DNA of 64,000 nt from IMG/VR virus record IMGVR_UViG_3300047322_001237, positions 186,001 to 250,000 of that record; one strand, written 5' to 3'. A program made the translations under genes and the position numbers. The notes beneath the pieces are model-generated. The model was not told the DNA's origin. It worked only from the letters and a program-made list of their open reading frames with translations, and searched no databases. Below, piece by piece: positions 1-45,697 of this stretch. Position 1 is the stretch's first letter. Each line of letters begins with the position of its first letter.

Positions 1-913
1 CGTGGTTGCTCGGATCACGGTATTTCACGTGGCCGGTGGCGAGCACCACCAGGTTCCCCGCCGACTGTCGATACGTCCGTTCGATATGCGGGTACTTGTT
101 CTTCGGGATGTTGATGATCGTGAGCGTCGATGGCTCGCTGTAGAAGCGGGTCGTATCGAGCGCGGGATAGACGTACCACTGATTACCTTGGACGTAGTAG
201 CCCATCGCCGAGTTGTACACGCCTCCGCAGTGCTTCTGGATGTACTGAGGCACATCCATCAGTCGTGTCCCGTGCGGGATGACGATATGTTCACGAGGCT
301 TCGGATTTGCCGACTTCACCATCGTGACGCCCTGGACCTGTCGTTGACCGTTGACGGTCGTCTTTTGCGACGCTGCCGTGAGGATGGTCTTGATCGCGTC
401 ATCGACGGTCGTGTTCCGGAAGATCTGTCCGACCGACATCATCCGCATCTGCTCGACGCCCTTGTTGACGCACTGGAAATGCACCGTCGCTATGTCGGTC
501 AAGTCCAGGTTCATGCGGCTCGGCGAGTTGAAACCGTTTTGCTCCAGCAGCGGCGACCCCTTGTCGAGGAGCGTTCCCGTGAACAGTTCCGTCTTGATGA
601 CGCTTTGCTGATCGGTGGTGTCGCCCATTTCCTTCAGAGGCGTGTACGTCAGCATCACATCGACGGCGTTCTTGTACGGATACACTTCGTGCGCGTACAC
701 ACCCATCGGGATCTGCATCTCGACGATCAGCTCGTCGCCATAGGAGTCGAGGTAGTTTCGCTTCAGGTCAATACTCGTGACCTTCAAAGGCTGGACATAC
801 GTGCCCGTGGTCAAGACGAGAAGGTCAGCGCGCACGGTGAAGTGCACCGGCTTTGCGCCACCATTGACGACTTGCTCGACCTCCATCATCAAGGCCGATT
901 GTTCGAGTTCCAT
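1..913 (-). CDS. Virion structural protein, partial (runs off left edge; phiKZ gp101-like by position)
   Basis: Not in ORF track. ATG at 913 (MELEQSALMMEVEQVVNGGAKPVHF...), RBS-like AAGAGG upstream, in-frame at both ends checked, last gene of the minus-strand virion operon. Confidence 0.7.
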   Translation of the reverse strand, partial: MELEQSALMMEVEQVVNGGAKPVHFTVRADLLVLTTGTYVQPLKVTSIDLKRNYLDSYGDELIVEMQIPMGVYAHEVYPYKNAVDVMLTYTPLKEMGDTTDQQSVIKTELFTGTLLDKGSPLLEQNGFNSPSRMNLDLTDIATVHFQCVNKGVEQMRMMSVGQIFRNTTVDDAIKTILTAASQKTTVNGQRQVQGVTMVKSANPKPREHIVIPHGTRLMDVPQYIQKHCGGVYNSAMGYYVQGNQWYVYPALDTTRFYSEPSTLTIINIPKNKYPHIERTYRQSAGNLVVLATGHVKYRDPSNH

Positions 914-2964: not shown

Positions 2965-4483
2965 TTGTGTTCTCCACGGCTTGTACATAGAACGTCTCGA
3001 CGGACTTGAAGCCCGTCTGACTGGGGACGGCACTCATGAAGCCGAGCATGGAATTGCGAGAGGTCTGGTTGCTGTTGCCGATCGGTTTCGGGTAGCGGTC
3101 GCGGGGCAGCGCTGGCCACAGGGCCTCGATCAAGCGGACGAGGATGTCGTAGTTGGCGAGCAGGCGTGTCCACGCGGCGGGACTCAAGAGACGCCAGTTG
3201 TAGCAGAGGCCAAACCAGACGTGGAACCGTGCCCGCGGATTGGGATCGAACGTCGTAAGTACGTTCAGGTCGCCATCGACGCGAACCGTGCCATCAGCCT
3301 GCAAGTCGTTCGCGGCATACAAGTTGCACGAGAACACCGAGTTGTAGAGCTGCGTCATATAGGGCGCCTCGCCCGTGACGAAGGCCTTCATCCGGTCATC
3401 CATCGACCATCCTTCCGACAACTCGTCAAGGTTCATCAGCAGATTCGGATTGCCCTCGGCCGACAGATCGAGCGCCGTCATGCCGCTGAAGATGCGGATG
3501 AAAAAGGGCGGCTGGTTGTTCGGCACGAACTCATCCCACGCGGGAAAGCGCAAGCCCTCATTGCCGTTGAACCATCCGTCGAGCGATCGCGTCCGATTGA
3601 ACTGTTCGAAGTAGTAGGCCGACAGCGAGAAGCTTTTCTGTATCTGCTCCGGATTGAACGGCAGCTTGTCTTCGCGGTACTTGATGAGCTGGTTGTGAAC
3701 CATCTGTGGATACTCCATCACCACAGATACCGGCTTGTCGTACTTGAACTTGAACGCGCAGCTGATCGTCCACGTATCGGTGTCGTCTTCTTTGGATCCG
3801 ATCTCTGGTTCGCCTTCGAAATCCCAATATCCGACGATGCGTCCCTGGTGTTCGGGAACCGCGACTTGCAGCTGCTTCCCGCTGAGGTTGGACTCGACGG
3901 TCGCGCGGGCGGTGACGCTATTCTTGAACCACTGGGCGAACGTATCGCCGTAGCCCGCCACGTTCTCCATCAGCGTGTGGATCTCCTCGAGGATGACCAT
4001 CGAGACAGGCGGCAGCTGGTAGGCATAGCGGACGTCGAGCACCTGCACGTCACGCATCTGTGAAGTGCGCACGCGAATCTGCTCGCGCCAGCGCTTCGCC
4101 TTCACTTCGTCGATTGCGCGATACTTGAAGTTGATCGTGATCTCGGTGGACGAGTACACGGGCTTCAGCATCGTTTCGACGCGGGGATCGTGGAAGATGA
4201 AAAGGTTGTCCGGGTATAGGACAGCGGTACTCAGAAGTCGGTCTTGATCGACGGCTTCATCGACTTCGATCGTCACCTGATCGTAATAGGCAAGCTCGCT
4301 ATCAGCAGGATCGGCATGGAGCGTCGACCCCGGCTGCATGGTGTTACCGTGCGCGGACGGGTAGAGAATCGGCGTGTTGTCAGGCAGGCCCGTCAGCTTG
4401 AAGAGACGGCGGGCCACGTCATAGACCACTGGACGCGTTACGCTGTCGTACGTCTCCGGGATAGGCAATACAAGTTTCGGCAT
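2948..4483 (-). CDS. Virion structural protein (phiKZ gp98-like by position)
   Basis: 511 aa, phage-like codon use, first gene after terminator at 4541-4560. Confidence 0.65.
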   Translation of the reverse strand: MPKLVLPIPETYDSVTRPVVYDVARRLFKLTGLPDNTPILYPSAHGNTMQPGSTLHADPADSELAYYDQVTIEVDEAVDQDRLLSTAVLYPDNLFIFHDPRVETMLKPVYSSTEITINFKYRAIDEVKAKRWREQIRVRTSQMRDVQVLDVRYAYQLPPVSMVILEEIHTLMENVAGYGDTFAQWFKNSVTARATVESNLSGKQLQVAVPEHQGRIVGYWDFEGEPEIGSKEDDTDTWTISCAFKFKYDKPVSVVMEYPQMVHNQLIKYREDKLPFNPEQIQKSFSLSAYYFEQFNRTRSLDGWFNGNEGLRFPAWDEFVPNNQPPFFIRIFSGMTALDLSAEGNPNLLMNLDELSEGWSMDDRMKAFVTGEAPYMTQLYNSVFSCNLYAANDLQADGTVRVDGDLNVLTTFDPNPRARFHVWFGLCYNWRLLSPAAWTRLLANYDILVRLIEALWPALPRDRYPKPIGNSNQTSRNSMLGFMSAVPSQTGFKSVETFYVQAVENTNATRR

Positions 4484-4540: not shown

Positions 4541-4560
4541 GAGAGGGCCGAAGCCCTCTC
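4541..4560 (-). terminator. Intrinsic terminator
   Basis: GAGAGGGC-N4-GCCCTCTC then TTTATTCC on minus strand. Confidence 0.8.
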
Positions 4561-4591
4561 CTTGTTTGCGATGCAGGAAACGAACAAGCGA

Positions 4592-27186: not shown

Positions 27187-28509
27187 TTAGAAAAGGGCGG
27201 TCTTGTAATTCATGCGAGCCACCTGCAACGCGGTCCCGTGCATTTTCTTCATAAATAGAAGCAGGAACGTGTTTCCGTAGCCCGCGATCGCGGCGGAGAG
27301 GGCTGTGGGACTGAGCGCGAGCTTGTCGCCTACGCATACAGCGCAGTAGTCGGTCTTTTCCAGCTTGCAAAACATGGAGCTGCGCAAGAGGATTTTCTTG
27401 CCCATGTACTTGCCTGCGGCTTCCAAATCCGGGACCTTCTCGTGACCGTCTTGCGTCACGACGGAGAAACCCGGCAGCTTGTGGATGGAGTCGTTGTCTA
27501 CAAAGATCTCCAGGCCGAGACGAGCGCCGCAATCTTCCTGCGTCACCGTCATGTTCGACGAAGCACGCAGCAGCCACTTCACAGCCTCACCGCCAAGCAT
27601 GGTTTCCGCACCACGATTGAACGAGCCTGCCCGCAAGGAGTTGTTCATCGCCGGGAACTTGGTGATGTCCCAACCTTCGGCGAGCGAGTTCGTCACCAGG
27701 TCAACCTGAACGCCATCGCCCAATCCGGCTTCCGCACCGTGCATCAGGAATAGCTTCGAGCGGACGACGTCGTAGGATTTCCCCGTGATGAGGAAGTTGG
27801 CGCCCTCGTCGTCCTTCAAGTATTCCTTGTCGTACGCGATGAGCTTCTTCATGATGCTGGCGATGACGGCCGGATCGTTCAACCGGTCCTTGTTCTCTTC
27901 CAGCAGCTTCTTGCGCAGCTCGAAGATGCCGGGCGGCGCCTGCATCGTCTTGCGCGTCACGGCGGGCACACACAGCTGCGTGAAGCCAGCAAGGTAGAAC
28001 ATCGCGTCACAGAACTTCAGGTACTCGCTGACATAAAGCGGCGCGTTTCGGTCGCCTTCGTTCGGCGCTGTCTCGCCCGGCTTCAGGTCGTCGACCATTC
28101 GGCCGAGCACGTAGGCCTCGAGCTTCTCTGCGTTCACACGGCCCGTCAGGAACTCGACCTTCTTGCCGAATGGCCAGATGATCGCGGTGAAGTTGAAGAG
28201 CACGTTTCCGTAAGTCGTCTTCACGTCAGCGTAGACGTTCGGAACCTCGCCTTCCTTCAGATCGATGTGGTCCTTGATCTTGAGCGGCGGTTCTTTCGGG
28301 TCCGCGTCCTCGATCAAGGTCAGCGCATTGCCCTTCTCAGGATCCACAAAGAAATGTCCAGAAGGTGTCTGGACGATCCTGTACGGATATGGGTCGGACT
28401 TCCATGCCTCCATGCCTTCACGAATCAAGCTGAACGCCGAGATCACCCACGCGCGCCGTCGATACTCATCGGCCTGCATGGCCTTGAGGAAGAATGTCCG
28501 CTTATCCAT
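27187..28509 (-). CDS. Virion RNA polymerase beta' subunit, C-terminal part (phiKZ gp80-like)
   Basis: NSLAEGW...AGSFNRGAET...VTQEDCG...RSSMFC...CAVCVG Zn-site pattern; start MDKRTFF overlaps upstream stop. Confidence 0.8.
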   Translation of the reverse strand: MDKRTFFLKAMQADEYRRRAWVISAFSLIREGMEAWKSDPYPYRIVQTPSGHFFVDPEKGNALTLIEDADPKEPPLKIKDHIDLKEGEVPNVYADVKTTYGNVLFNFTAIIWPFGKKVEFLTGRVNAEKLEAYVLGRMVDDLKPGETAPNEGDRNAPLYVSEYLKFCDAMFYLAGFTQLCVPAVTRKTMQAPPGIFELRKKLLEENKDRLNDPAVIASIMKKLIAYDKEYLKDDEGANFLITGKSYDVVRSKLFLMHGAEAGLGDGVQVDLVTNSLAEGWDITKFPAMNNSLRAGSFNRGAETMLGGEAVKWLLRASSNMTVTQEDCGARLGLEIFVDNDSIHKLPGFSVVTQDGHEKVPDLEAAGKYMGKKILLRSSMFCKLEKTDYCAVCVGDKLALSPTALSAAIAGYGNTFLLLFMKKMHGTALQVARMNYKTALF

Positions 28510-29359
28510 GTTTGATGCCTGTTGTTTCCTTGATCTCGCACTTGAGCAACAAGTCACCGATTGCGATGTCGGCCTTGGTCAGGAGATCGAGGTCGTTGAT
28601 GAAGTCCTCGATGTGCGCCTTGATGATGGCGCGAGGATTTTCGTATCCGTCGGTCGAGATGATCGCCATCGACACGAGGTTGGCTGCGATGTTCTGCACC
28701 GGCATCCCTTCGAACGCACGGCCCACGAGATTCGCGTAGATCGTGAACGGATAGCCGAAATCGACCCCGCTCGCGATGTAGTGGTCCATGATGAGGTCGA
28801 GGCCACCGACGTGATTCTTGAAGCGTCGATAGGCGTCGAGGTACTTCTCGCGAACTGTCGAGTGCTCGTCCGGTTCCTCAAGCTCAACGCGCTCGTTTGT
28901 TACTTCGATGATCTTTTGGATCGTCCGCTGACTCACGCCGTGGATGTCCACCAACAGTTCTTCTGCAGTGTGGCTGGTCGTGACGGAGAGGATTTCGGCG
29001 AGCAGCTCTTCCGGGTGCAGATCCATCGCGCAGTGCTGCAGGATGATGCGCGGATCCTGATACGACTCGATCGCGTGAAGTCCGGTGAGCAGCGTGGTCA
29101 GGTGACTGACCCGCGCGTCTTCGCTCGGCTCGACACCCATTGCCTTGAGCAAGGTGACGAGAATCTCCCGTGTCGTGTCGTAGATGTGCTGGACGGTCTG
29201 ACCTTGATCGGTCCCGTCGTCCGTCATCAGGATCTCAACGAAGTCATCTGAATAGTCCGGCAACTGCAGCGCATCGAGTGCCGCGTGTGCTTCTTCAATT
29301 GTTTGGGTGAATTCGGGCGAGGCGGCTCCCGCCAGATAGTCCCGCAGAATGTCAATCAT
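28502..29359 (-). CDS. Conserved jumbo-phage protein (gp79-like by position)
   Basis: Start MIDILRDY; coupled to the vRNAP gene. Confidence 0.65.
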   Translation of the reverse strand: MIDILRDYLAGAASPEFTQTIEEAHAALDALQLPDYSDDFVEILMTDDGTDQGQTVQHIYDTTREILVTLLKAMGVEPSEDARVSHLTTLLTGLHAIESYQDPRIILQHCAMDLHPEELLAEILSVTTSHTAEELLVDIHGVSQRTIQKIIEVTNERVELEEPDEHSTVREKYLDAYRRFKNHVGGLDLIMDHYIASGVDFGYPFTIYANLVGRAFEGMPVQNIAANLVSMAIISTDGYENPRAIIKAHIEDFINDLDLLTKADIAIGDLLLKCEIKETTGIKHG

Positions 29360-29521
29360 AGATGGCGAGTCCCGCAATAAGAAAATACCGACGGTATTAA
29401 TGCTGTAGCGAAAACCATCGACGCCAACCCGATCTCTTTTTGATCGAGCCAGGGAATTTGGAAACGGTCAAATAATGGATCGCAGAAACAGTACAACTAA
29501 CTTTCTCAGGATGTTTCACTC

Positions 29522-30301
29522 ATGACCAAGAAGAGCCAAGCGCGCATTCAGCGCGACATCGCAGAAGGCAAGCGCAAGCCGGCCATGCGTTCGGTAAACA
29601 TGGCAATGAACCAGCCGATCAAGCCGACGCAGAAGGCTGATGGCTCGTTCTCGATGTCCGCAGCAGATCGCATTCTCGCCGAATGCCGGACCGGCGCTAA
29701 CACCAACAAGGAAGCGAACACCTGCTGGAACGACCTGATCGGCGTCTATCAGCAGATGTCGGGCATGCTGCTTCGTCACACCGACATCTCGTTGGTCTTG
29801 AACGACGCCGACCTGATGTCCTTCATCGAAGACAAGGACACGTTCAAGACCAACGTCCGTCAGTTCGCGAGCGACCTGCGCCAGTTGAGCGACGAGCTGC
29901 AACAGCTGCGCGCGCTGCACAACGGCAAGACGGGCGGCAGCGATGATCCGGAAGAAGTGCTGCACTCGATCCACATCTTCGAGCAGTACAACCTGTGGAT
30001 GACGAAGCACGACGGCGTGCTCATGCCGACGGTCTACCACATCCTTGAAGCGACGAATCAGGCTGAACTCGCTCGCGGTCGGGCTCGCGCCGCAGACGGT
30101 CAACTCAACGGCGATGCACCGGAACTCGCAGTCGATCCCGCTGTGCTCGACGTGAACCAGATCACCGACGTCACCTTCAACGACGACAACGTGGGCCAAG
30201 TCGTCGGCGTGCCGGATACGAAGGGACTCGTCGAAGCAGCGGTCGAATCTGGTCTCGCAGCCGAGAAGGCCGGTCGCGAAGGCAACTTCGAAATCGTCTA
30301 A
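29522..30301 (+). CDS. Conserved jumbo-phage hypothetical protein
   Basis: 259 aa helical; AGGA RBS. Confidence 0.65.
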   Translation: MTKKSQARIQRDIAEGKRKPAMRSVNMAMNQPIKPTQKADGSFSMSAADRILAECRTGANTNKEANTCWNDLIGVYQQMSGMLLRHTDISLVLNDADLMSFIEDKDTFKTNVRQFASDLRQLSDELQQLRALHNGKTGGSDDPEEVLHSIHIFEQYNLWMTKHDGVLMPTVYHILEATNQAELARGRARAADGQLNGDAPELAVDPAVLDVNQITDVTFNDDNVGQVVGVPDTKGLVEAAVESGLAAEKAGREGNFEIV

Positions 30302-30328
30302 GTCTCCATTCAAGAAAGAGAGGTTGTT

Positions 30329-31918
30329 GTGAGTGGTCACAAAGAACATCCGGTGAACGCGTCGTTCACTCAGCATCTGGAAGCGCAGCAAGGTTCGGAC
30401 GTCGTTCCGCCGGTCGAGACCCAAAGCGCGCCCGTCCTCGGCATGGACACGATCGAGACCGAATATCAGGAACCGGCAGGCTCGCTCGCTGAATCGAAAC
30501 CGGAAGAGCCGGAAATCGCCGGCATCGGTCATTTGCCCGAGTCGACAACCGCCCAGCAGGACGCTGAAGTGTTCTTCCCGCTCGACGGCGAATGGGACAC
30601 CAACGGCACGTTCCTGATCGGCCAGGCCGACACGCAAGATCGTGCATCCCGCGCCATTGCCGCCATGCCGAATCTGGATCTGACAGATACGGAAAGCGGT
30701 CGCGAGTGGGTGGACTACATGCGTGAAAGCATGGTCAGCGCACCCAACAAGGATCAGTGGCGTGCCACGGTCGATCGTGAAGCCAGCGAATGGCGTCAGG
30801 GCGTGAAGTCCGAGCGCGGCAATATCGCGATGGGTGCGATGTCGTTCAAGAACGTCGGTGGCGAACTTCTCACTGGCGAGAAGGCAGTGTTGCAAGTCCG
30901 TGCGCTATTGGGCCTGGGAAGTACCATCCAGGTTCCGCTGTGGCACTCAGGCTTCCACATCACCGTCAAGGCGCCGTCGGAAATCGCGCTGCTCGAACTC
31001 AACCGTCGCTTGATGGACGAGAAGATCGTCATGGGTCGCACGACCAACGGTCTGGCTTTCGCGAATACGTCGTCTTATCTCAGCGGCGGGTTGCTCGACT
31101 TCGCCATGGAACACGTGTACGACACGTCGCTCCAGGAGAAGGACATGAATCGCATCAAGTCGATGATCGAAACACCCGATTTGCCCTTGCTGTTCTGGGG
31201 TCTCGCCTGCGCCATCTGGCCGCGCGGTTTCCAATACGCTCGTCCGTACCTCGATCCGATCACGAACGAGGAAAAGATGCTGCGCGAGAAGCTCGCGGTT
31301 GGCAAGCTGCTCTGGGTCGACACCAAGGCACTCACGCCGTGGCAGATCGCGCACATGGCCCATCGCGGCAGCGGCACGATGACTGCGGACGCGGTTAAGC
31401 GCTACAAGACCGAGTTCACGCTCGGTCAGGCGCGTCGCGTCCAGTTGTCGGAGCATATCGCGGTGACGCTCAAGGTGCCGGCGGCCAACGACTACGTGCT
31501 CTCGGGTTATAAGTGGATCAGCGAGATCACGCGCGTGGTCGATGAAGCGTTCCAATTGCCTCCGGAAGATCAGCGTCGCACCAACTTCATCATCCAGCAC
31601 GGCAAGGCCACCAACATGCGCCAGTACATCCACTGGGTTGCTGAGGTTCATCCGGGTGCCGCCACGATCACGGATCGCGAAACCATCGAGAAGATCATCG
31701 ATGACCTGTCGAGCAACGACGAGGTGCGTCGCAAGTACTTCGACGAGGTCAAGAAATACATCGATGATTCGACGATGGCCGTCATCGCAACGCCGACGGC
31801 GAACACGAAGGAAGAGAAGGAGCTGCCGCGCTTCCCGCATCTGTTGCCGATGAATGTCGAGCAGACTTTTTTTACCCTGCTCGAACAGAAAATCAGCCAG
31901 ATCTCCCTCCGGAACTAA
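30329..31918 (+). CDS. Conserved jumbo-phage protein, possible tail/baseplate assembly factor
   Basis: 529 aa, GTG start with GAGG RBS; T TTT TTT heptamer near 3' end. Confidence 0.65.
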   Translation: MSGHKEHPVNASFTQHLEAQQGSDVVPPVETQSAPVLGMDTIETEYQEPAGSLAESKPEEPEIAGIGHLPESTTAQQDAEVFFPLDGEWDTNGTFLIGQADTQDRASRAIAAMPNLDLTDTESGREWVDYMRESMVSAPNKDQWRATVDREASEWRQGVKSERGNIAMGAMSFKNVGGELLTGEKAVLQVRALLGLGSTIQVPLWHSGFHITVKAPSEIALLELNRRLMDEKIVMGRTTNGLAFANTSSYLSGGLLDFAMEHVYDTSLQEKDMNRIKSMIETPDLPLLFWGLACAIWPRGFQYARPYLDPITNEEKMLREKLAVGKLLWVDTKALTPWQIAHMAHRGSGTMTADAVKRYKTEFTLGQARRVQLSEHIAVTLKVPAANDYVLSGYKWISEITRVVDEAFQLPPEDQRRTNFIIQHGKATNMRQYIHWVAEVHPGAATITDRETIEKIIDDLSSNDEVRRKYFDEVKKYIDDSTMAVIATPTANTKEEKELPRFPHLLPMNVEQTFFTLLEQKISQISLRN

Positions 31919-31986
31919 GACCGCGGCACGTCGCGCAGCCGGACTTTGGCGAGCACGTCAAGGACGAGAATCCACTGAAGGCCGCA

Positions 31987-32346
31987 ATGGAGCGCGGTCC
32001 CGTAGTGCTCAACTCCTCCGACGTGCAGCTGGCGCTGCGCGACTGCTACGAAACCGCGTACCACATCTACGACCATTCGCGATCCGGGCCGAACGACACG
32101 CTCGCGCTGGTCGCAATGCGGGATGCGGAAGATAGTTCGTCGGGTGGTCTTCTGTACGAGCAGATTCGGCGATTCGAAGAGCGGCAAGTCTACAAGCACT
32201 TCGGTCTGAACCTGGTCCAGTTCCTTGAGCTGCCGTCAGACATCGTGCGGTTCGTTCTGGAAATGTCGCTCAAGCGTCAGCAGAACACCGCGAAGACGCA
32301 GGAAGACGTGGTGGATGAAATCCAGCGTATGGCGGAGGGACAATGA
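31987..32346 (+). CDS. Small conserved protein; possibly the C-terminal extension of the upstream protein via -1 frameshift
   Basis: Frame open from 31768 without an earlier start codon; YKHFGLNLVQFLELP resembles the end of tail-chaperone/gp51-type proteins. Confidence 0.6.
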   Translation: MERGPVVLNSSDVQLALRDCYETAYHIYDHSRSGPNDTLALVAMRDAEDSSSGGLLYEQIRRFEERQVYKHFGLNLVQFLELPSDIVRFVLEMSLKRQQNTAKTQEDVVDEIQRMAEGQ

Positions 32347-32789
32347 TCGAGCAGGTTGCAGTGCAAGACATTTTCACTTCTGCCTGTCAGGCGCTGATTG
32401 TGCCGGTGAACGTAGTGGGTACAATGGGCAAGGGTTTGGCGAAAGCCTTCGCTCAGCGGTATCCAGGACTCGAAGCAGCGTATCGAGATGCGTGTCGCCG
32501 GCGAGTGTTTTCAAACCACGGGCTGTTTGTCTGGGAAGCAGGGGACGGGAAACTGATCGTCTGCTTTCCCACCAAGCGTCACTGGGCTAACCCATCTCGA
32601 CTTCCATGGATCGACGAAGGTCTAAAACGACTGGCGCGCGACTTCGAAAAGTATCAGATCCGGTCTATCGCGATGCCGATGATCGGATGCGGTGAGGGTG
32701 GTCTACGTTGGGATGACGTCTATCCCTTGATCGTGGAATGGCTCGAACCGGTGGAACTGCGAGTGCGAGTATGTCTATCGCCGCGGTGA
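32343..32789 (+). CDS. Macro domain protein (Poa1p/DarG-like ADP-ribose hydrolase)
   Basis: DIF...PVNVVGTMGKGLAKAF...FPTK.HW...SIAMPMIGCGEGGLRW. Confidence 0.85.
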   Translation: MIEQVAVQDIFTSACQALIVPVNVVGTMGKGLAKAFAQRYPGLEAAYRDACRRRVFSNHGLFVWEAGDGKLIVCFPTKRHWANPSRLPWIDEGLKRLARDFEKYQIRSIAMPMIGCGEGGLRWDDVYPLIVEWLEPVELRVRVCLSPR

Positions 32790-32809
32790 AACCAAAAAAG
32801 AAGGAAGGT

Positions 32810-32843
32810 CATATCGGGAGGGCACGAGCCCTCCCTTTATGCC
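32810..32843. terminator. Repeated bidirectional terminator element
   Basis: CATATCGGGAGGGC-ACGA-GCCCTCCCTTTATGCC, identical arms to 24254-24287. Confidence 0.75.
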
Positions 32844-32858
32844 GTCTTCTCTTTTTCA

Positions 32859-33029
32859 TTACTTCATTGCCACGACTGCACGCTGCGATGCCATGTCGTG
32901 ACCGACGTGGTCCGCAACCACGAGGCTAAGGCCACCGAGGATGAAGAACATCGTGATCAGGAAGGCGCGCTTCGTCGCACCCTTGTTTGCTTTGCCCGAG
33001 TGGTAGTTGTTGTTTGCAAAGTCGATCAT
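32859..33029 (-). CDS. Small membrane protein (56 aa)
   Basis: Below ORF-track cutoff; GGAG RBS; AFLITMFFILGGLSLVVA TM segment; promoter motif at 33086. Confidence 0.6.
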   Translation of the reverse strand: MIDFANNNYHSGKANKGATKRAFLITMFFILGGLSLVVADHVGHDMASQRAVVAMK

Positions 33030-33085
33030 GATTCGCTCCGAATAGATTGGTTTTGCAATCTCACCTGTGGATTGCGTTCGGGCGA

Positions 33086-33093
33086 GTCATATG
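33086..33093 (-). promoter_or_regulatory. Candidate phage early promoter CATATGAC
   Basis: YATATSAC-N5-YGA family. Confidence 0.5.
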
Positions 33094-33161
33094 TGTCTGA
33101 GAATTTCTGGAATCCTCGATTGACGGCTTGCTACAATTTCTCTTTCCTCAGGAGTTTTGTA

Positions 33162-33488
33162 ATGGCAAGGCAACCTCGCGCGACACTCGAACAACTACGC
33201 GAACGACTGGCGACGGTGCAGGAACAAATCGCCAAGGAAGAGGAGAAGCGGCGCACGACGGCGCTTGAGGAGATTCATTCGCTGATGTTTCAGCACGGAC
33301 TCACGCCGACTGACATCGAAGCGAAAGGGAAACGAGGGCCGGCGAAGAAGCAATCGAAAGCTGCTTCAAAGACGACGGTCGCGCCGAAGTATCAGGATCC
33401 GAAGACGGGCGCGACGTGGAGCGGTCGCGGTCGCGAACCGCTGTGGATCAAGGGCAAAAAGCGCGAAAAGTTTTTGATCGCGAAGTAA
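33162..33488 (+). CDS. hns: H-NS family nucleoid-associated protein (Burkholderia Bv3F-like)
   Basis: Coiled-coil N-term; VAPKYQDPKTGATWSGRGREPLWI DNA-binding motif; AGGAG RBS; extended -10 TGCTACAAT upstream. Confidence 0.92.
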   Translation: MARQPRATLEQLRERLATVQEQIAKEEEKRRTTALEEIHSLMFQHGLTPTDIEAKGKRGPAKKQSKAASKTTVAPKYQDPKTGATWSGRGREPLWIKGKKREKFLIAK

Positions 33489-33511
33489 GCGAGCATCTTA
33501 GTGATCGCCCG

Positions 33512-34285
33512 TTACGCTGCGGGGTCCGGTTCGTCGTCAGGCGCCGGATCGTTCTTCTCCGTTTGATCCTTAATGTTCGACCCTTTCCTGCTTCTTGGTT
33601 TTGACTTCGCTTTTGATTCAGGTGCACTAGAGGACCTTTCGGAAGCGCCTGCTGACGTGCTCTCGTTCCGTGGCAGTTTCGGGACGAAACCAAGGTAGTC
33701 GCCAATCCGCTGGCGGATACTTTCCTCCAAACCGTGGGAGAGCCCACTGGCGATTCCACAAATCACCATCCCCAATGGCACGGAAATGAGCAAGAGCATC
33801 GTGTCCTTGCCAACGATAAAGCCAGCATACGCGCCAATTGCCGAACCGGAGGCACGCACTAAATTTTCTAATGAGATGCTGCTAAGTGGGGAGCTTTCGA
33901 ATGGAACAATGCTCTCGTAAGACAAGTAATTCACAAACTCCATGGCATGTCCGTAGTTGACCTCTCGAAGAGATCTAGACTCATGTATGACATCCCTTAA
34001 TGCTTTCCTTGGGTCGAGTCCCTTCAAGGGTTGGTCAGCATTAGGATTTGTGATCTCTTTGAAATAGTCGAAACGCCCAATTAGGGCTCTTTTTTGCCAG
34101 TCGAGGCGGTACCGCTTCAGCTCCACGTTTTCATCCCGAATCGGTCGGACGAAACCCTCAGGAAAGCACCGCTGCGGAACGCTGAACAAATGCGCAGACA
34201 GACCACTTTCTTCGTCGTAGATCGTGGTCTCGTAAAACTGAGGCTTCCGATAAAACTTGGGCGTGCCCGGTTGTTCATCAGTCAT
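33512..34285 (-). CDS. Hypothetical membrane-associated protein, lower GC
   Basis: 257 aa with Gly-rich hydrophobic hairpin (AIGAYAGFIVG...LLISVPLGMVICGIASGL). Confidence 0.6.
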   Translation of the reverse strand: MTDEQPGTPKFYRKPQFYETTIYDEESGLSAHLFSVPQRCFPEGFVRPIRDENVELKRYRLDWQKRALIGRFDYFKEITNPNADQPLKGLDPRKALRDVIHESRSLREVNYGHAMEFVNYLSYESIVPFESSPLSSISLENLVRASGSAIGAYAGFIVGKDTMLLLISVPLGMVICGIASGLSHGLEESIRQRIGDYLGFVPKLPRNESTSAGASERSSSAPESKAKSKPRSRKGSNIKDQTEKNDPAPDDEPDPAA

Positions 34286-36022: not shown

Positions 36023-36664
36023 GTGAGCCTGCCGATAATCGAGCCGGGCGACATGATGCACGGCGTGCGAGTACGCGCGCCCTTCTCTCGCGATGGCTGG
36101 ATCTTTGAGATCAAATACGACGGGTATCGCGCCTTTATCCGCAAGCAAGCTGACCGCGTCGAACTTCTATCTCGCCACGGCACGGTCATGAATGCAGTCT
36201 TTCCGGACATCATCGAGGCCGTTAGCGCGGTGCCCGGAAACTTCATTTGGGACGCCGAGCTCACGGTCGACGAGAGTAACGGACGTTCTTCGTTCGAGGG
36301 CCTTCAACAGCGAGGGCGCTTACGCGTTCCGATGCGTGTCCGTGCAGCCGCGCGCGAGCGCCCTGCCCGTCTCTACGTCTTCGATATCCTCGCCTCCGAA
36401 GATGACGACCTACGACAACTCCCGCTCGACCAACGAAAGGAAATCCTCAGAGACACGTTCGATGACAACTCGGTGCTGATCTACGCAGGGGGAATCATCG
36501 GCGCCGGTGAATGGGTCTTCGAGCAGGCGCAGAAACTCGACCTCGAGGGCGTCATGGCGAAACGCCTCGACTCGCTCTACGTGGCGGGTCGCTCCCATGC
36601 ATGGCAGAAGGTCAAGAACCTAGACTACAGCCGCCCTGCTGCTCTCGGTATCGGTCGCCGGTAA
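36023..36664 (+). CDS. ATP-dependent DNA ligase, adenylation domain only
   Basis: Motif I EIKYDGYR, III WDAEL, IIIa YVFDIL, IV EGVMAK, V WQKVK; no OB domain. Confidence 0.85.
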   Translation: MSLPIIEPGDMMHGVRVRAPFSRDGWIFEIKYDGYRAFIRKQADRVELLSRHGTVMNAVFPDIIEAVSAVPGNFIWDAELTVDESNGRSSFEGLQQRGRLRVPMRVRAAARERPARLYVFDILASEDDDLRQLPLDQRKEILRDTFDDNSVLIYAGGIIGAGEWVFEQAQKLDLEGVMAKRLDSLYVAGRSHAWQKVKNLDYSRPAALGIGRR

Positions 36665-37896: not shown

Positions 37897-39099
37897 GTGA
37901 ATGCAAGCACTCTGCTCGCCAGCGGCCTGCCGCCGGCGCTTGACTACGCCGCGTCCATGGACACATTGGCTGATGTGTCCGCCCGTGCCTCGGGTGTTCT
38001 AAATCAGATCCGCGATCGGATGCTGGAACCATATCCGCGCAAACGCCCGCCCACGTTCACGAGCGCACAGGTGGCCGGCCTGTGCGGACTTGAAAAAATG
38101 CGTTTCCAGTATCTGACTACGAAAGGCGATCTCCCCACCGGCACGTCGATTAAAAATGGCAAGAGCAAAGTCTTTACGTTGGAAGAGACACTACGGTATA
38201 TCCGGGCTGTCGGCAATCGCCCGCCGCGACCAGAGAACGCTCCCGGCAAAGTTGTGACGGTGGCCAACTTCAAAGGCGGTGTGGCTAAGACTACGACGGC
38301 CGTCTCGCTCGCTCAGGGACTCACCTTACGCGGTCGTAAGGTTCTCGTTATCGACTGTGATCCCCAAGGCACCGCTACGCAGTTATGCGGCTTCTCGCCC
38401 GAAACGGAAATAGGCGAGGAGATGACGCTCATGCCTTTGATCTACGGCGATGAAACGAGACTGGACTACGCAGTCCAACAAACCTACTGGCAGGACCTAG
38501 ACCTGGTCCCGGCGTCTTCCGGTCTCTTTAGCGCTGAGTTTCATATTCCGGGCAAGCTGGCCACCGACCACAAGTTCGAATTCTGGAACATCTTGAATCA
38601 GGGCCTCGAAGGCCTCAAAGACAAATACGACGCCATCGTCATCGACACTCCGCCATCTCTAAGTTATCTGACGATCAATGCGTTGATGGCGGCGAACGGA
38701 CTATTGATGCCCTGCCCGCCCGAGGGGCTCGACTTTGCCAGCTCCACTCAGTTCTGGTTCCTCTTCACCGAAATGTCGAGGCACGTTCCAGCAATGCGTG
38801 AGACGAAAGACTTCGATTTCGTCAATGTCGTGCTCACGAAATCGAAGAGTGACGACCTTTCCGGCGTTGTACGGGGCTGGCTGCAAAAGGCCTACGGAGA
38901 TCGAGTCCTTCCGTATGAGATTCCCGACTCCGTCGTCCCGAAGAGCGCATCTGCTCAACTCTCTACCGTCTACGACCTTACCAAGCCCGAGGGCAGCGTG
39001 GCAGCCTACACCCGCTTCAAGGATCCGATGGATCAGTTGGTGAGGCACATCGACTCCCAGTTTGTACAGGCTTGGGCGTCTTCCATGTTGGAGGTCTAA
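37897..39099 (+). CDS. parA: ParA partition ATPase (type Ia, N-terminal HTH extension)
   Basis: Deviant Walker A NFKGGVAKTT, DCDPQG, DTPPSL; GTG start with GGGG RBS. Confidence 0.95.
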   Translation: MNASTLLASGLPPALDYAASMDTLADVSARASGVLNQIRDRMLEPYPRKRPPTFTSAQVAGLCGLEKMRFQYLTTKGDLPTGTSIKNGKSKVFTLEETLRYIRAVGNRPPRPENAPGKVVTVANFKGGVAKTTTAVSLAQGLTLRGRKVLVIDCDPQGTATQLCGFSPETEIGEEMTLMPLIYGDETRLDYAVQQTYWQDLDLVPASSGLFSAEFHIPGKLATDHKFEFWNILNQGLEGLKDKYDAIVIDTPPSLSYLTINALMAANGLLMPCPPEGLDFASSTQFWFLFTEMSRHVPAMRETKDFDFVNVVLTKSKSDDLSGVVRGWLQKAYGDRVLPYEIPDSVVPKSASAQLSTVYDLTKPEGSVAAYTRFKDPMDQLVRHIDSQFVQAWASSMLEV

Positions 39100-40094
39100 T
39101 GCGCGCCGCTCAAAGACTTAGTGAAAAGATTGGTGACATCGACATCCCAGAACCCGGTCAATCGCCGGCGGCCGGTGATCCGTTTCGTCCAAGGACGGCA
39201 CCAGGTGGAGCGCTCGCCTTTCAGCATGCAATGCGCGAGAAGCAGGCCGAGCTCGACGCGATGTCCGCACAGCTGGCCGAACTGCAAGCTCAGAAGCAGA
39301 CGAACTCGCCCAGCGGCGTCGAGATTCCCCTCGACCAACTGCATGAAGTCGCAGGTCGCAGACGCTACATGCCGCCGGAAAAGTACAATGAATTGCGGGA
39401 AAACCTGCGGAACAACAAGCTGATTCAGCTGCCCGTCATTCTGCCACGTGCAGAAGGTGGCTTCGAAATACAGTCGGGACATCACCGGATCGACGCTTAT
39501 CGGGAACTCGGGCGTTCGACCATTCGCTGTGTTCTGGGTGACGCGACGGGCGATGAAGCTGACGACGGCGCGTTCTGGGCCAATCTGATGCAGTCGGACC
39601 TGACTGACTATGAGAAGTACGTTGGACTGACGCGCGTACATTCGAAACATCCGGAATTGGGCCAAGTCGAGCTAGGCGAGCTCGTCGGCATTAGCACTTC
39701 CCACCTCAACGCCCTGCTCTCTTTCGGTCGTTTGCCTGAGCAGGCCCGCGCGATTCTCGATACCAATAAGGCGATCATGGGCGCGAACGCGGCCGCGGCT
39801 TTTGCGGCTATCGCGGAGGCCGGCAAGGCGGAGCGGGTTGTGGAAGCGGTACGACGTCTCTCCGAGCGGGAGCTAGATCAGGCGCAGGCGGTGAAGTTTG
39901 CAAAAGCCGTTGAGACGCCCAAGGCAACGAAGCCGGCTGCTGAGTCGTACAAGGTGAAGACCGGAAAGAGTACGTGGTGCGATGTGCGCAAGACGAAAAA
40001 CATCATGCGCATCGAGTTCCAGTCCGAAGAGGTGGCCAATGCCGTCCAAGAAGCCATCAAGCAAACCCTCGAGGCGCTCGCCGCAAAGTCCTAA
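39099..40094 (+). CDS. parB: ParB partition protein
   Basis: TAATG overlap with parA; ParB N-domain (...FEIQSGHHRIDAY...) and HTH (ELGELVGISTSHLNALL). Confidence 0.93.
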   Translation: MRAAQRLSEKIGDIDIPEPGQSPAAGDPFRPRTAPGGALAFQHAMREKQAELDAMSAQLAELQAQKQTNSPSGVEIPLDQLHEVAGRRRYMPPEKYNELRENLRNNKLIQLPVILPRAEGGFEIQSGHHRIDAYRELGRSTIRCVLGDATGDEADDGAFWANLMQSDLTDYEKYVGLTRVHSKHPELGQVELGELVGISTSHLNALLSFGRLPEQARAILDTNKAIMGANAAAAFAAIAEAGKAERVVEAVRRLSERELDQAQAVKFAKAVETPKATKPAAESYKVKTGKSTWCDVRKTKNIMRIEFQSEEVANAVQEAIKQTLEALAAKS

Positions 40095-40307: not shown

Positions 40308-40345
40308 GCAAATTCAATCCATTTTTGAGAAATGGACCGCTCGAC

Positions 40346-41434
40346 ATGTCTATCGCGCAACAGCTCGTTGCTGGCGAGGGTGAAACACACCCCGACGATT
40401 CAGCAGCCCTCACCGCTTTCCGGTGTGACTCGACAAACCTGCCTTGGGTCATCTTCCGGGCTGCGTTCCGTGCAGCACACATTGAGGAGATCCCTCCTCG
40501 CGCACGTGCGGTTCTTTCCGCCCTCGCCCGCACCGTCGACGCCGCCAAGCCGTTCGCCGCGATCTTCGCTCGTCGTGAACTGCTCACAGGACGCGCACTG
40601 CAATCCATGCGCACCTTCTACCGCAGCCTCGATGACTTGGAGTCCGCCGGTCTAATCGATCGCCGCGCTCAATCCCGCTACGTTGAAGCCGGTCTCTTCG
40701 GTCGTGCCTACATCCACCTCACCGCGCGAGCAGCCGAGCTTCTAGGGCTCGTTGAGTCGATGCAACCGCCCTCACCTGAGCCCGTCGAATCTTCGCTTCC
40801 GCATCCGTCTGCCAACTTGGCAGACGGTGGAATATATAAGGATCTAAGCCCTTCTGTTTTTCAAAAGAGACAACCGGGGCAAGTGCCTGAGGATCTCCAG
40901 CGTCTGCGGTCCCTGGGTTTTTTTGATTTCTTGATTTTCAAACTCATGCGGGAAGCGCGTGAGCATGGCAAACGTCTCTCGGATGTCGTGGAAGCAACAT
41001 GGGACCACCTGAAGCTCGCCAAAGCCCCAATCAACTACCTGCGGAGTCTGCTGCGGGGAACGGTTGATTTCGCTCACCAACTGCGCGCCAGGATTAACGT
41101 CAAAGCCGAGGAGCAGGCTCGGGTGAAGCGCACCTTGGAAGCCGATCAGGTAGCCCGTCAAAGCGCCGGCAAAACGTTCCTAGACGCCTCGGGGGCACGC
41201 AAGTACGTGATCGATGCCGACGGCGAGAACATGGTCGTCTACAACCGTGACGAAGGCATTGGTCGACAAGCCGCGGGTTGGAAAGAAGGTTTTGCTGCAG
41301 CGCTCGCTCGAGGTCAGATCCGTGCGGCGAGCAGCTACGTGCAGCCGGAGCAGGGCAGGGAACGTCCGCCAGTTACAGCACAGGTTCGGGAACACATCGC
41401 GGGACTGCGCAGCCTGCTGGGAGCTCGTCGCTAG
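40346..41434 (+). CDS. Replication initiator of Burkholderia chromid/megaplasmid type (winged-helix, often annotated replication protein O)
   Basis: NLPWVIFRAA...RARAVLSALARTVD...IFARRELL...RTFYRSLDDLE...GLFGRAYIHLT; third gene of the parA-parB-rep cassette; start may be TTG 40325. Confidence 0.8.
   Translation: MSIAQQLVAGEGETHPDDSAALTAFRCDSTNLPWVIFRAAFRAAHIEEIPPRARAVLSALARTVDAAKPFAAIFARRELLTGRALQSMRTFYRSLDDLESAGLIDRRAQSRYVEAGLFGRAYIHLTARAAELLGLVESMQPPSPEPVESSLPHPSANLADGGIYKDLSPSVFQKRQPGQVPEDLQRLRSLGFFDFLIFKLMREAREHGKRLSDVVEATWDHLKLAKAPINYLRSLLRGTVDFAHQLRARINVKAEEQARVKRTLEADQVARQSAGKTFLDASGARKYVIDADGENMVVYNRDEGIGRQAAGWKEGFAAALARGQIRAASSYVQPEQGRERPPVTAQVREHIAGLRSLLGARR
40805..40827. repeat. 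23-bp interrupted palindrome inside rep (candidate oriV)
   Basis: CCGTCTGCCAA-C-TTGGCAGACGG followed by AT-rich AATATATAAGG...TTTTTCAAAAG. Confidence 0.55.
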
Positions 41435-44101: not shown

Positions 44102-45631
44102 TTACATTGCATTGGGGATAACGACTGACGAGTACGCCAGTGCGCGAGTTCTAAGCAATTCCTGATTCTTTTGCTGATACGCCATGTGCTTCTCGACGTC
44201 GGCGCAGTAAAAGGAAATGCATTCAGGCGTCTTTCCCGTCTTCAGCTTTCGAGTCCGGCCAAACATCTGCAGGATCTGCTGCTGACTGGAGATCGCCACG
44301 GACATGATGTTCGTGGTGAGGTTCGGGATGTCGACCGCGGTGCCTGCCGAGATCGGTGTCGTGACGCGGATGTCCGCTTCGATACAGTTCTCGAACGGGT
44401 CCTCTTCCACGTAACGACGCACGTCCAGGTTCGGATACTGCTTCTGCAGGAACTCCGTCACGAGCGTGCAGAATTCGATCGACGCGCAGAAAATGATCGC
44501 CTTCTCAGTCGGCTGATACGTCCTCAGGTACTTCGCCTTAAGCACCTGGTCAATCAGGTTGAGGTAGTTCTTCAGGACAGGCGGGTTCTTCATCAGGTAC
44601 TTCTCGAACACATGGTTCGAGTAGTTACCTTGCATGTCCTTGGTGCGGATGGCGTCAGGCCGCGCAATGCGGTAGAACAGGGCGGTCGCATTGGTGTAGC
44701 GGTCGTATGCCGGACCCTTATGGCGGTCAGGGGACGGATACGCGATCTCATACATCCGCTGGATGAACGCATCTTCCTTGTCGAGCGTTGCGGACAACGA
44801 CAGCGACTTATGGCAGTGCGTGTAGAGATCCACCAGGAAGTTCAGGTGAAAATCCTGGTGCACTTCGTCGATGAGGCGGAACCCCGATCGCAGCGTTTGC
44901 ATCAACTCCGATGGACGACATGCATAGCCCATCTCAAGCGTCTGGTCGCCGTACTCCTTGTAGAGTTTGAACCAGTTCTGGATCGTCTTGTTACTGATCA
45001 GGACGATCTTGCTCGTAAGCCGACCTTCGAGCGCCATCTCCAGAAGCGCCATCAGATGATCGCTTCCGCGGATGATCATCAGGTCTTCAATCGCGATGTC
45101 GAACACTTCGCGGATTTCGTCACGCCACTTCTCCAGATACATCGGCTTCACGATGATCACCGGAGCAAGGCGCGTCTTCGCCACAGCAAAGAGCGACGTT
45201 ACGCCTTTACCTTTACCCGTCTGAAACTCGATCAGCTTCGAGACCGAACCGTCCTCCTTGAGGACGTAGTCGACGCCTTCATCCTGATAGTCGTGCAGGT
45301 TCCAGCTGTCGAAGATCTTGAAGTCAACTTCTCGAACCGGCGGCAACTCGACCTGCTCGATGTCGACGAGCGAATCCTTCAGGTTGTGAAACGCGAGGTA
45401 TTCCTTGAATTTCTTCAGGACGTTGATGTGATAGCGATACTCACCAGTGTCAGCACAATGCGTCGCATAGACCGGAGGCTTCGGAGGCGGCTTTGTCGAA
45501 TAAGGACTCGGCTTGGCGCGAAGGGGCTGCACGAACTGCTTGGTGAATCCGAGCACCGCGGGCATGGCGCGCGGCGTCACCTTGCTGACGACGAAGTGAT
45601 GCGAATGAAGACGAATCAGAAGTTCAGCCAT
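44102..45631 (-). CDS. SF2 (DExH) helicase (phiKZ gp75-like)
   Basis: QTGKGK, DEVH, SAT, QMFGRTR motifs; start MAELLIRL. Confidence 0.9.
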   Translation of the reverse strand: MAELLIRLHSHHFVVSKVTPRAMPAVLGFTKQFVQPLRAKPSPYSTKPPPKPPVYATHCADTGEYRYHINVLKKFKEYLAFHNLKDSLVDIEQVELPPVREVDFKIFDSWNLHDYQDEGVDYVLKEDGSVSKLIEFQTGKGKGVTSLFAVAKTRLAPVIIVKPMYLEKWRDEIREVFDIAIEDLMIIRGSDHLMALLEMALEGRLTSKIVLISNKTIQNWFKLYKEYGDQTLEMGYACRPSELMQTLRSGFRLIDEVHQDFHLNFLVDLYTHCHKSLSLSATLDKEDAFIQRMYEIAYPSPDRHKGPAYDRYTNATALFYRIARPDAIRTKDMQGNYSNHVFEKYLMKNPPVLKNYLNLIDQVLKAKYLRTYQPTEKAIIFCASIEFCTLVTEFLQKQYPNLDVRRYVEEDPFENCIEADIRVTTPISAGTAVDIPNLTTNIMSVAISSQQQILQMFGRTRKLKTGKTPECISFYCADVEKHMAYQQKNQELLRTRALAYSSVVIPNAM

Positions 45632-45697
45632 AATGAACCTGCATAGAACGGAGGAAGGGGATTGCGCGGACGGTTGCAATCCCCCGCACTACGATGC

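Follow-up and report, generated by a model that had tools for sequence, protein, structure and literature searches.

We propose that two neighbouring open reading frames of a phiKZ-like jumbo phage are a single recoded gene with two products, a 529-aa form and a roughly 672-aa form, with the longer most likely made by ribosomal -1 slippage on a run of seven T that would add a 157-residue extension. The arrangement was identified in a 64,000-nt window of IMG/VR virus record IMGVR_UViG_3300047322_001237 (positions 186,001 to 250,000 of that record); coordinates below are those of the window, and its features are listed in Table 1. The original prediction was that a programmed -1 frameshift at the T heptamer fuses the upstream frame (ORF1) to the downstream frame (ORF2), in the manner of lambda G/GT. 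Every sequence fact on which it rested proved correct: the heptamer is in phase, the -1 frame is open with no ATG, GTG or TTG before position 31987, and slippage would give a fusion of 515 + 157 = 672 aa, with a junction reading EQTFF/YPARTENQ. The preference of the gene for TTC is also real; elsewhere in ORF1 and ORF2 there is one TTT against 19 TTC, and T is the third base of only 13% of codons. The frameshift interpretation is likewise supported, with the qualifications that the resemblance to G/GT is one of arrangement only and that the evidence is comparative.

Table 1. Features of the recoded locus (window coordinates).
Position	Strand	Feature	Supporting observations
30329..31918	+	ORF1, zero frame, GTG start (provisional), 529 aa, proposed short product; stop at 31916-31918; residues 1-61 predicted disordered	Orthologue of PhiPA3 gp074, phiKZ gp077, Goslar gp081, EL ORF047 and SPN3US gp227; phrog_4585, E 1.6e-103; tblastn hits in 205-246 phage records; AF2 model, pLDDT 81, pTM 0.81
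31768..32346	+	Whole open -1 frame, stop to stop (stop codon 32344-32346); the 157 codons from 31873 would be joined to ORF1 residues 1-515	
31867..31873	+	T_TTT_TTT, in phase with ORF1 codons ACT TTT TTT (then ACC); proposed shift site	T-run at the homologous FF codons in 142 of 142 loci
31873..31918	+	Dual-coding overlap; zero frame encodes the C-terminal helix of the short form (TLLEQKISQISLRN, then stop), -1 frame the start of the extension (YPARTENQPDLPPEL)	Zero-frame tail is helix 510-527 in the model; only blastn match of a 3-kb query (30000-33000) to Ralstonia phages RP12 and RP31 is the 61 nt at 31823-31883, at 83.6%
31919..31986	+	Apparently intergenic stretch, coding in the -1 frame, without ATG/GTG/TTG; family motif HVAQPDFG at 31927-31950	Third-position substitution bias in related pairs; PHROG profile of ORF2 has 35 more N-terminal positions than the ATG-started ORF
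31987..32346	+	ORF2 as called (ATG start, 119 aa); C-terminal part of the -1 extension, helical, with a long last helix	phrog_12109, E 1e-23; AF2 model of 31873-32343, pLDDT 79 overall and above 90 for residues 93-156

Within the window alone, the open -1 frame is unremarkable. The -1 frame of this 57% GC gene has few stops, such that the 37 stop-free codons between the run and the ATG have P about 0.48, and T7 runs occur at about ten sites in the window (21 overlapping matches against 4 expected), although the codon choice at the run is unlikely by chance. Conservation of the heptamer and frame in chimallivirus orthologues had been named in advance as a test and strongly supports the frameshift; the comparative evidence is what decides the matter. 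We examined 142 related loci from GenBank phages, IMG/VR and metagenomes, which form 48 clusters at 50% identity and 22 at 40%, and include phiKZ-type PA7, PhiPA3, EL, SPN3US and Goslar. A T-run sits at the homologous position in all 142 loci, as an in-phase T_TTT_TTN in 126 of them; the -1 frame stays open for 140-191 codons after the run, through the ORF2 domain, in all 139 complete loci. By contrast, the +1 frame is closed within 17 codons of the run in about two thirds of the 53 loci for which this was scored. The -1 frame opens as little as 0-5 nt before the run in some lineages, and ORF1 stops as little as 33 nt after it; the run is therefore the only shared candidate site. In AT-rich relatives the open frame cannot be chance: 84 stop-free codons before the first start in PA7 have P 7e-8, and 135 codons in the related locus L024 have P 3e-9. 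For 33 lineages combined the figure is 1e-56, and the chance that all share the -1 frame is 1e-16.

No locus has the two parts fused in frame, including when we looked specifically for natural fusions as a "Rosetta stone". This effectively refutes the possibility that a homopolymer sequencing or assembly error, or a real frameshift mutation, split a single 672-aa gene. Homopolymer runs are error-prone and the window comes from a metagenome-derived record, but the same split, at the same run and with the same phase, occurs in all 142 loci, including many independently sequenced isolates. Moreover, the zero-frame tail after the run is itself conserved (TLLxQK..I..R) and is modelled as a helix. 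We consider this explanation extremely improbable.

A second alternative is that there is no recoding, and that ORF2 is a separate gene translated from its own start (ATG 31987 in the window, or coupled re-initiation or a non-canonical start elsewhere), with the T-run reflecting a conserved Phe-Phe in ORF1. Annotators and gene callers treat the two as separate genes; RP12 has an ATG overlapping the ORF1 stop (TGATG); and both common coupling overlaps, ATGA and TGATG, put the second gene in the -1 phase. The ATG at 31987 has a weak AAGG 5 nt upstream, so independent initiation may also occur. Nonetheless, a conserved peptide motif, HV..P.FG, lies in the -1 frame just after the ORF1 stop, and in 97 of the 116 loci with the motif there is no ATG, GTG or TTG anywhere in the open -1 frame upstream of it; in some loci the first start comes 66-122 codons after the ORF1 stop. 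The corresponding stretch of the window (PRHVAQPDFG and onward), which the original prediction judged to look coding, carries this family-wide motif, and the window has no near-cognate start (CTG, ATT, ATC or ATA) between the ORF1 stop and the motif. FLC1-1B lacks the ATG of its relative RP12 yet keeps the peptide. Substitutions in the equivalent start-less stretch of related pairs fall at -1-frame codon positions 1/2/3 as 103/65/192; for ten non-overlapping pairs the counts are 51/35/104 (chi-square about 41). In PA7, the annotated ORF2 covers only the last 80 of about 164 conserved codons. Lastly, protein constraint on Phe-Phe does not explain TTT in GC-rich genomes that use TTC 70-95% of the time, nor the T at the preceding wobble base. 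We therefore regard independent translation alone as very unlikely.

The pattern of variation at the site suggests selection at the nucleotide level. The first Phe codon is TTT in every locus, even where TTT is 5-30% of Phe codons, and the base before it is T in most; only the last base varies (T, C or A), which is the pattern expected of X_XXY_YYZ. However, 16 of the 142 loci lack a canonical in-phase heptamer, having G_TTT_TTT (9 loci), G_GTT_TTT (3 loci) or A_CTT_TTT (4 loci). We found no stimulatory element; no strong downstream hairpin exists, as the original prediction noted. Folding energies downstream of the run were no better than those of shuffled sequences (z-scores around 0 for single-sequence folds of 33 loci), RNAalifold predicted no shared pair in 19 sequences, and no consistent Shine-Dalgarno-like sequence lies upstream of the run. 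A 3-4 bp CUGC-UCGN-GCAG hairpin 3 nt after the run occurs in some relatives, but it is too weak, too close to the site and not general. Such an element is not obligatory; lambda G/GT is not known to have one. A promoter and terminator scan of 29300-33700 found nothing relevant.

The same fusion protein could instead arise by transcriptional slippage, with RNA polymerase, probably the phage's own multisubunit non-virion enzyme, adding one extra U on the T7 run in a minority of transcripts; ordinary translation of those messages would then read ORF1 straight into ORF2. The site is a pure homopolymer of 7-8 T in about 120 of the 142 loci, and a U-run in the RNA paired with dA in the template is the weakest hybrid and the classic context for slippage, as at Shigella mxiE (T9), Thermus dnaX (A9) and IS elements; in these systems, and in potyvirus P3N-PIPO, a homopolymer run likewise links two overlapping frames. 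Where the second Phe codon is TTC, the run is often kept at seven by an extra 5' T that a ribosomal heptamer does not need, which fits a run-length mechanism as well as it fits ribosomal slippage, and a polymerase needs no RNA stimulator. On the other hand, runs of 5-6 T occur in about 20 loci and none is longer than 8, which is shorter than most bacterial examples and short for efficient polymerase slippage in known bacterial cases, and the first codon is never TTC while the last base is free, as the ribosomal heptamer rule predicts. RNA contigs from three phiKZ/PA7 RNA-seq studies cross the run as T7 without an indel, indicating that the bulk message is unedited; contigs drop rare variants, so this excludes only majority editing, and the one raw-read run examined held no phage reads. 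We consider transcriptional slippage possible but less likely. If the phage's own non-canonical multisubunit RNA polymerase were responsible, which we think improbable but not excluded, this would be the first recoding signal read by a jumbo-phage RNA polymerase, conserved across the whole chimallivirus lineage.

In the model we favour, most ribosomes read ORF1 to its stop and make a 529-aa protein that ends in a short helix, whereas a fraction slip back one base while the two Phe codons of U_UUU_UUU occupy the P and A sites, with both tRNA-Phe re-pairing perfectly with UUU in the -1 frame. Those ribosomes would continue through 31873-32343 and make a 672-aa protein in which the last 14 residues are replaced by a proline-rich linker, the HV..P.FG motif and a helical domain. 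The ratio of the two forms would be fixed by the slippage rate, as in lambda G/GT. Our analysis establishes the site, the frames, their conservation and coding constraint on the start-less stretch; the fusion protein itself, its production on the ribosome rather than through altered RNA, the slippage rate and the function are inferred, since no fusion protein, junction peptide or ribosome footprint has been seen. We are highly confident that recoding of one kind or the other yields the fusion, and moderately confident that the mechanism is ribosomal. Structure prediction of the ORF1 core with the extension gave only weak support for the extension sitting against the core, and we do not rely on it: the score was 0.48 against 0.00 for the best control, partner pLDDT was at least 48, and three runs shared at least 27% of their contacts, but while the calibration mark was reached by 58 of 80 solved complexes and 2 of 110 mismatched pairs, at 0.60 or under it was reached by only 7 of those 80 and by both mismatches that passed.

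The arrangement resembles the -1 frameshifts of dsDNA-phage tail assembly chaperones, including lambda gpG/gpGT and P2 E/E+E', the latter using T_TTT_TTG (Levin et al., 1993; Xu et al., 2004). In those systems, a morphogenesis-related gene yields a short and a C-terminally extended product by a -1 shift a few codons before the stop of the upstream frame, the downstream frame has no start of its own, no strong RNA stimulator is needed, and the arrangement is conserved while the sequences diverge. The "G/GT-like" label nonetheless does not extend to the proteins. ORF1 is 529 aa, against about 100-150 aa, and lies next to a virion RNA polymerase subunit gene and a macro-domain gene rather than between tube and tape-measure genes; the neighbours are an RNA polymerase beta subunit, phrog_5038, phrog_28433, a macro domain and an H-NS-like protein. 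Neither ORF1 nor ORF2 has a Pfam hit, and their PHROG families are of unknown function; the only hint of a tail-chaperone relation is a sub-threshold language-model feature score of 0.86 between ORF2 and Phage_P2_GpE, a level that is often chance. T7 gene 10A/10B also reportedly uses a -1 shift on a U-rich site, G_GUU_UUC, with tRNA-Phe in the A site, close to the end of the gene, to give a minor extended form (Condron et al., 1991), and the T5 clade here (loci L022, L026 and L027) has the in-phase site G_GTT_TTT. However, T7 10B adds about 50 residues with no conserved domain and is dispensable, whereas the extension described here is a conserved 140-190-residue module.

We infer that ORF1 is probably a very distant relative of the T4 gp26/gp51 baseplate-hub assembly proteins (Pfam PF12322, T4_baseplate), although the link is weak. 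Foldseek matched the ORF1 model to BFVD predicted structures named baseplate hub assembly protein or hub subunit (E 1e-4 to 1e-2, target TM 0.44-0.54), and a language-model feature hit reached a PF12322 cluster (0.91, 203 shared features); no solved structure of the family is available for comparison. By contrast, sequence evidence is below family thresholds: the ORF1 protein of the window has no PF12322 hit, 1 of 49 orthologues reaches E 0.0075, below the gathering cut-off, and hhalign probability is 5-23%, whereas T4 gp26 and gp51 themselves score 215 and 177 bits. A local CxxC match to gp26 lies near the C-terminus, but the window's own protein has lost the Cys pairs, and ORF1 is twice as long. 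T4 gene 26 also gives two products, gp26 and 26', but by internal initiation rather than frameshifting. Searches for relatives of solved structure, by sequence and by fold (including Foldseek against the PDB), found nothing beyond generic helical matches at Z about 5, and a fold search of the Atlas returned only orthologue clusters. T4 gp51 is annotated as a chaperone rather than a virion part, none of the relatives of ORF1 is among solved PDB chains, and its Goslar orthologue is not named in the text of the Goslar virion cryo-EM preprint. We infer that both isoforms probably act in virion (tail or baseplate) assembly and are not part of the virion.

We found no mention of this frameshift in the searchable literature, including a 2021 comparative genomic survey and a 2026 review of jumbo phages. 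If our interpretation is correct, a gene pair conserved across the phiKZ-like nucleus-forming jumbo phages examined here, including the model phages PhiPA3, Goslar, SPN3US and EL, and phiKZ-type PA7, is really one gene with two products, and the downstream ORF has been given arbitrary and often badly truncated starts in public genomes. Recognition of this would correct core-genome lists and essentiality maps for these phages, supply a specific, testable junction peptide, and add a deeply conserved recoding site, U_UUU_UUN, that has no detectable stimulator. It would also suggest that fixed-ratio short and long isoforms, known from tail chaperones, are used by a gp26/gp51-like assembly factor.

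The virus record that includes the window is 278,988 bp long and has direct terminal repeats, with the window corresponding to positions 186001-250000. The gene order in the window matches that of phiKZ-like (chimallivirus) jumbo phages, and the order around ORF1 and ORF2 matches PhiPA3 gp077 down to gp073, such that ORF1 corresponds to PhiPA3 gp074 and phiKZ gp077, and ORF2 corresponds to PhiPA3 gp073. The macro-domain gene that follows ORF2 starts with an ATGA overlap on the ORF2 stop, and Goslar has a macro-domain gene (gp083) in the same position after its own ORF2. The genes, sites and sequence features discussed here are listed in the table.

Positions of genes, T-runs and other features in the window and in related loci.
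Sequence	Position	Strand	Feature
Window	27187-28557	minus	Virion-type RNA polymerase beta subunit gene
Window	28502-29377	minus	phrog_5038 gene
Window	29522-30301		phrog_28433 gene
Window	30329-31918		ORF1 (TAA stop at 31916-31918)
Window	31768-32346		Open -1 frame
Window	31867-31873		Seven T, in phase with ORF1 as T_TTT_TTT
Window	31927-31950		HVAQPDFG, the window's version of the HV..P.FG motif, in the -1 frame
Window	31987		First ATG/GTG/TTG in the open -1 frame
Window	31987-32346		ORF2
Window	32343-32789		Macro-domain gene (PF01661, E 5e-12)
Window	32898-33488		H-NS-like gene: C-terminal DNA-binding domain PF00816 (E 3.5e-13), weak match to N-terminal oligomerisation domain PF22470
Window	40918-40924		Second T7 run, in phase (NNT TTT TTT) with an automatically called ORF at 40325-41434
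Window	24238-45, 41458-67, 43426-36, 62421-30 (minus strand), 35201-08 (plus strand)		T-runs of 8-11 bases
Window	36023-36664, 39072-40094, 44102-45679 (minus strand)		PHROG hits to ATP-dependent DNA ligase, a ParB-like protein and a DNA helicase
Window ORF1	residues about 305-320 and 488-493		Regions where most orthologues carry Cys pairs
L063 (locus from Erwinia phage Simmy50)	2436-2984		ORF2 as annotated
L058 (locus from PA7)	3021-3263		ORF2 as annotated
L066 (locus from PA7)	about 4553-4569		Ends of RNA-seq contigs
L070 (locus from Bacillus phage vB_BspM_AgentSmith)	2678-3176		Same gene, recorded with a Bacillus host

The sequence features described in the original prediction, namely an in-phase run of seven T in ORF1 and a -1 frame that is open across this run into ORF2 with no earlier start codon, are all present. 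ORF1 reads ...GAG CAG ACT TTT TTT ACC CTG... at the run, and slippage would join residues 1-515 of ORF1, counted from the called start, to 157 codons of the -1 frame, giving a protein of 672 aa with the junction ...EQTFF/YPARTENQ.... Apart from this site, ORF1 and ORF2 use TTT once and TTC 19 times, and only 13% of codons end in T; ACT TTT TTT is therefore an unlikely codon choice. By contrast, the open frame in this window is not significant on its own, since the -1 frame of this GC-rich gene has a stop density of 0.02, such that 37 stop-free codons have P about 0.48. There are 21 overlapping T7 matches in the window, against 4 expected from shuffles, and the longer T-runs elsewhere in the window are probably terminator tails or promoter regions of this phage. 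The second in-phase T7 run lies in an ORF with no PHROG hit and follows a G+C-rich stretch, so it may be a terminator-like site rather than a second slip site. A first hint that ORF2 is longer than annotated came from a PHROG profile search, in which the ATG-started ORF2 matched only positions 36-145 of the 147-position profile phrog_12109.

ORF1 has relatives in 205-246 GenBank phage genomes. For comparative analysis, we collected loci from GenBank (FLC9, FLC1-1B, RP12, PhiPA3, the phiKZ-type phage PA7, SPN3US, EL, Goslar, FBKp24, Simmy50, Yong MS32, JM-2012 and AgentSmith), 51 loci from IMG/VR, and, as an independent replicate, 80 loci from metagenomes. In total, 142 loci have the 3' end of ORF1, and these form 48 single-linkage clusters at 50% identity and 22 at 40%. 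Every locus has a T-run of 5-8 bases, mostly 7 or 8, at the homologous Phe-Phe codons, and in all 139 complete loci the -1 frame is open for 140-191 codons after the run. By contrast, the +1 frame closes within 17 codons in about two thirds of the 53 loci in which this was compared. The -1 frame opens as little as 0-5 nt before the run in some lineages, and ORF1 ends as little as 33 nt after it; the run is therefore the only shared place where a shift could occur. No locus has the two parts in one frame, and an artefact or a decayed gene is excluded as an explanation because the split is universal and the zero-frame tail after the run is conserved.

In AT-rich genomes, the open -1 frame cannot be chance. 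PA7 has 84 stop-free codons before the first start (P 7e-8), and locus L024 has 135 (P 3e-9). Thirty-three lineages combined give 1e-56, and the chance that all 33 share the -1 phase is 1e-16, although the loci are not phylogenetically independent and these combined values are upper-bound illustrations. The AgentSmith locus, in a genome of 36% GC, has the site T_TTT_TTA and a 171-codon open -1 frame, and no other out-of-frame open stretch there exceeds 33 codons.

We next asked whether the stretch without a start codon is coding. An alignment of the -1 products shows a motif, HV..P.FG, a few codons after the ORF1 stop. In 97 of the 116 loci with the motif, no ATG/GTG/TTG lies anywhere in the open -1 frame upstream of it, and in several loci the first start comes 66-122 codons after the ORF1 stop. 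FLC1-1B has ACC where its relative RP12 has an ATG, yet it keeps the following peptide. Between the ORF1 stop and the first start codon, differences between related pairs fall at -1-frame codon positions 1/2/3 as 103/65/192, and for ten non-overlapping pairs as 51/35/104 (chi-square about 41), which is the classic coding signature. Moreover, the only blastn match between a 3-kb query (window 30000-33000) and Ralstonia phages RP12 and RP31 is the 61 nt around the run, at 83.6%, whereas the proteins themselves are about 38% identical, as would be expected of a dual-coding segment with a nucleotide-level signal. Independent translation of ORF2 without recoding, which we consider very unlikely, cannot explain the start-less conserved stretch or the codon choice at the run.

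In phase with ORF1, 126 of the 142 loci have T_TTT_TTN (86 with T, 38 with C and 2 with A), nine have G_TTT_TTT, three have G_GTT_TTT and four have A_CTT_TTT. The first Phe codon is always TTT, even in genomes where TTT is 5-30% of Phe codons, and only the last base of the heptamer varies freely, which fits the tandem-slippage rule X_XXY_YYZ. In one clade (IMG/VR loci L022, L026 and L027, with L020 and L030) the run has eroded to 5-6 T (GTT TTT TCC, ATC or ACC), yet the -1 frame and the motif are kept; the in-phase site there is G_GTT_TTT, and a CCA AAA G follows about 20 nt downstream. Four other loci (L039, L041, L129 and L136), in which a shift remains unexplained, have only CTT TTT ATT (T5, in-phase A_CTT_TTT), with the -1 frame opening just 5 nt before it. 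The pattern of variation does not exclude transcriptional slippage on the same run, since when the last base is C the run is often still 7 T long because of an extra 5' T that the ribosomal model does not need. We did not detect a stimulatory element: folding energies of the 80 nt after the run are no better than those of shuffles, and RNAalifold finds no shared pair. RNA-seq contigs from three studies of a phiKZ-type phage, aligned to PA7, cross the run as T7 without an indel, indicating that the bulk message is unedited and that the two frames lie on one assembled RNA contig, although rare U8 transcripts cannot be seen in contigs. In two of the three studies the contigs end about 10 nt after the ORF2 stop, which suggests a transcript 3' end there; one contig carries an extra A after position 4561 of the PA7 locus L066, a strain difference.

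Neither part has a Pfam family, or a relative among solved structures by sequence or by fold. The ORF1 model is confident (pLDDT 81, pTM 0.81), with residues 1-61 disordered, and in the model the zero-frame tail after the run forms the last helix (residues 510-527). Three weak but independent lines tie ORF1 to the T4 gp26/gp51 family (PF12322, baseplate hub assembly). First, a Foldseek search of predicted viral structures returns the orthologues and, below them, proteins named baseplate hub assembly protein or hub subunit, at E 1e-4 to 1e-2 with target TM 0.44-0.54. Second, one of 49 orthologues has a sub-threshold Pfam hit (E 0.0075). Third, an Atlas feature search reaches a PF12322 cluster at 0.91 with 203 shared features. 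However, hhalign against T4 gp26 and gp51 aligns only a CxxC segment, at probability 23% and 5%, and we therefore treat this family link as probable, not established. Most ORF1 orthologues carry two Cys pairs (a C..C pair and a CxxC pair, zinc-ribbon-like), which the window's clade has lost, with a deletion at the second pair. The Goslar orthologues (gp081 and gp082) are not named in the text of the Goslar virion cryo-EM preprint (10.64898/2026.04.21.720040), which fits an assembly factor and not a virion part. The model of the extension has a low-confidence first 90 residues and a confident helical C-terminal part ending in a 35-residue helix. A complex prediction of the ORF1 core with the extension gave weak support only: the score was 0.48, against 0.00 for the best control, with partner pLDDT of at least 48 and at least 27% of contacts shared between runs. 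In calibration, the mark was reached by 58 of 80 solved complexes and 2 of 110 mismatched pairs, but at 0.60 or under it was reached by only 7 of those 80 and by both mismatches that passed.

The interpretation offered in the original prediction, a programmed -1 frameshift fusing the two ORFs, is supported by these comparative data, although its likeness to lambda G/GT holds for the arrangement only. We propose that ORF1 and ORF2 are one gene with two products. In this view, the short form ends in a conserved helix, which in the long form is replaced by a linker, the HV..P.FG motif and a helical domain, with the ratio of the two forms set by the slippage rate. While the site, the open frames and their conservation are observed directly in the sequences, all evidence for the fusion is comparative or predicted, and the shift efficiency, the mechanism and the function are inferred. 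Recoding of one kind or the other is very likely; ribosomal -1 slippage is the favoured mechanism, though with only modest confidence, and transcriptional slippage on the same run is a less likely alternative.

The proposed arrangement works like that of lambda G/GT, P2 E/E+E' or T7 10A/10B, but ORF1 and ORF2 are not members of the G/GT family, as judged by size, neighbouring genes and sequence families. We found no description of this frameshift in the searchable literature; neither a 2021 comparative survey (PMC7824862) nor a 2026 review of jumbo phages (PMC13282480) mentions a frameshift, and the review likewise does not mention recoding or slippage. Hence, the type of arrangement is established in other phages, whereas its occurrence in this gene appears not to have been described. 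Public annotations handle ORF2 inconsistently: in Simmy50 it starts 136 nt inside ORF1, while in PA7 only the last 80 codons are annotated. The value of the finding is that the proposed recoding is family-wide, includes the model phages, and would correct a widespread annotation error.
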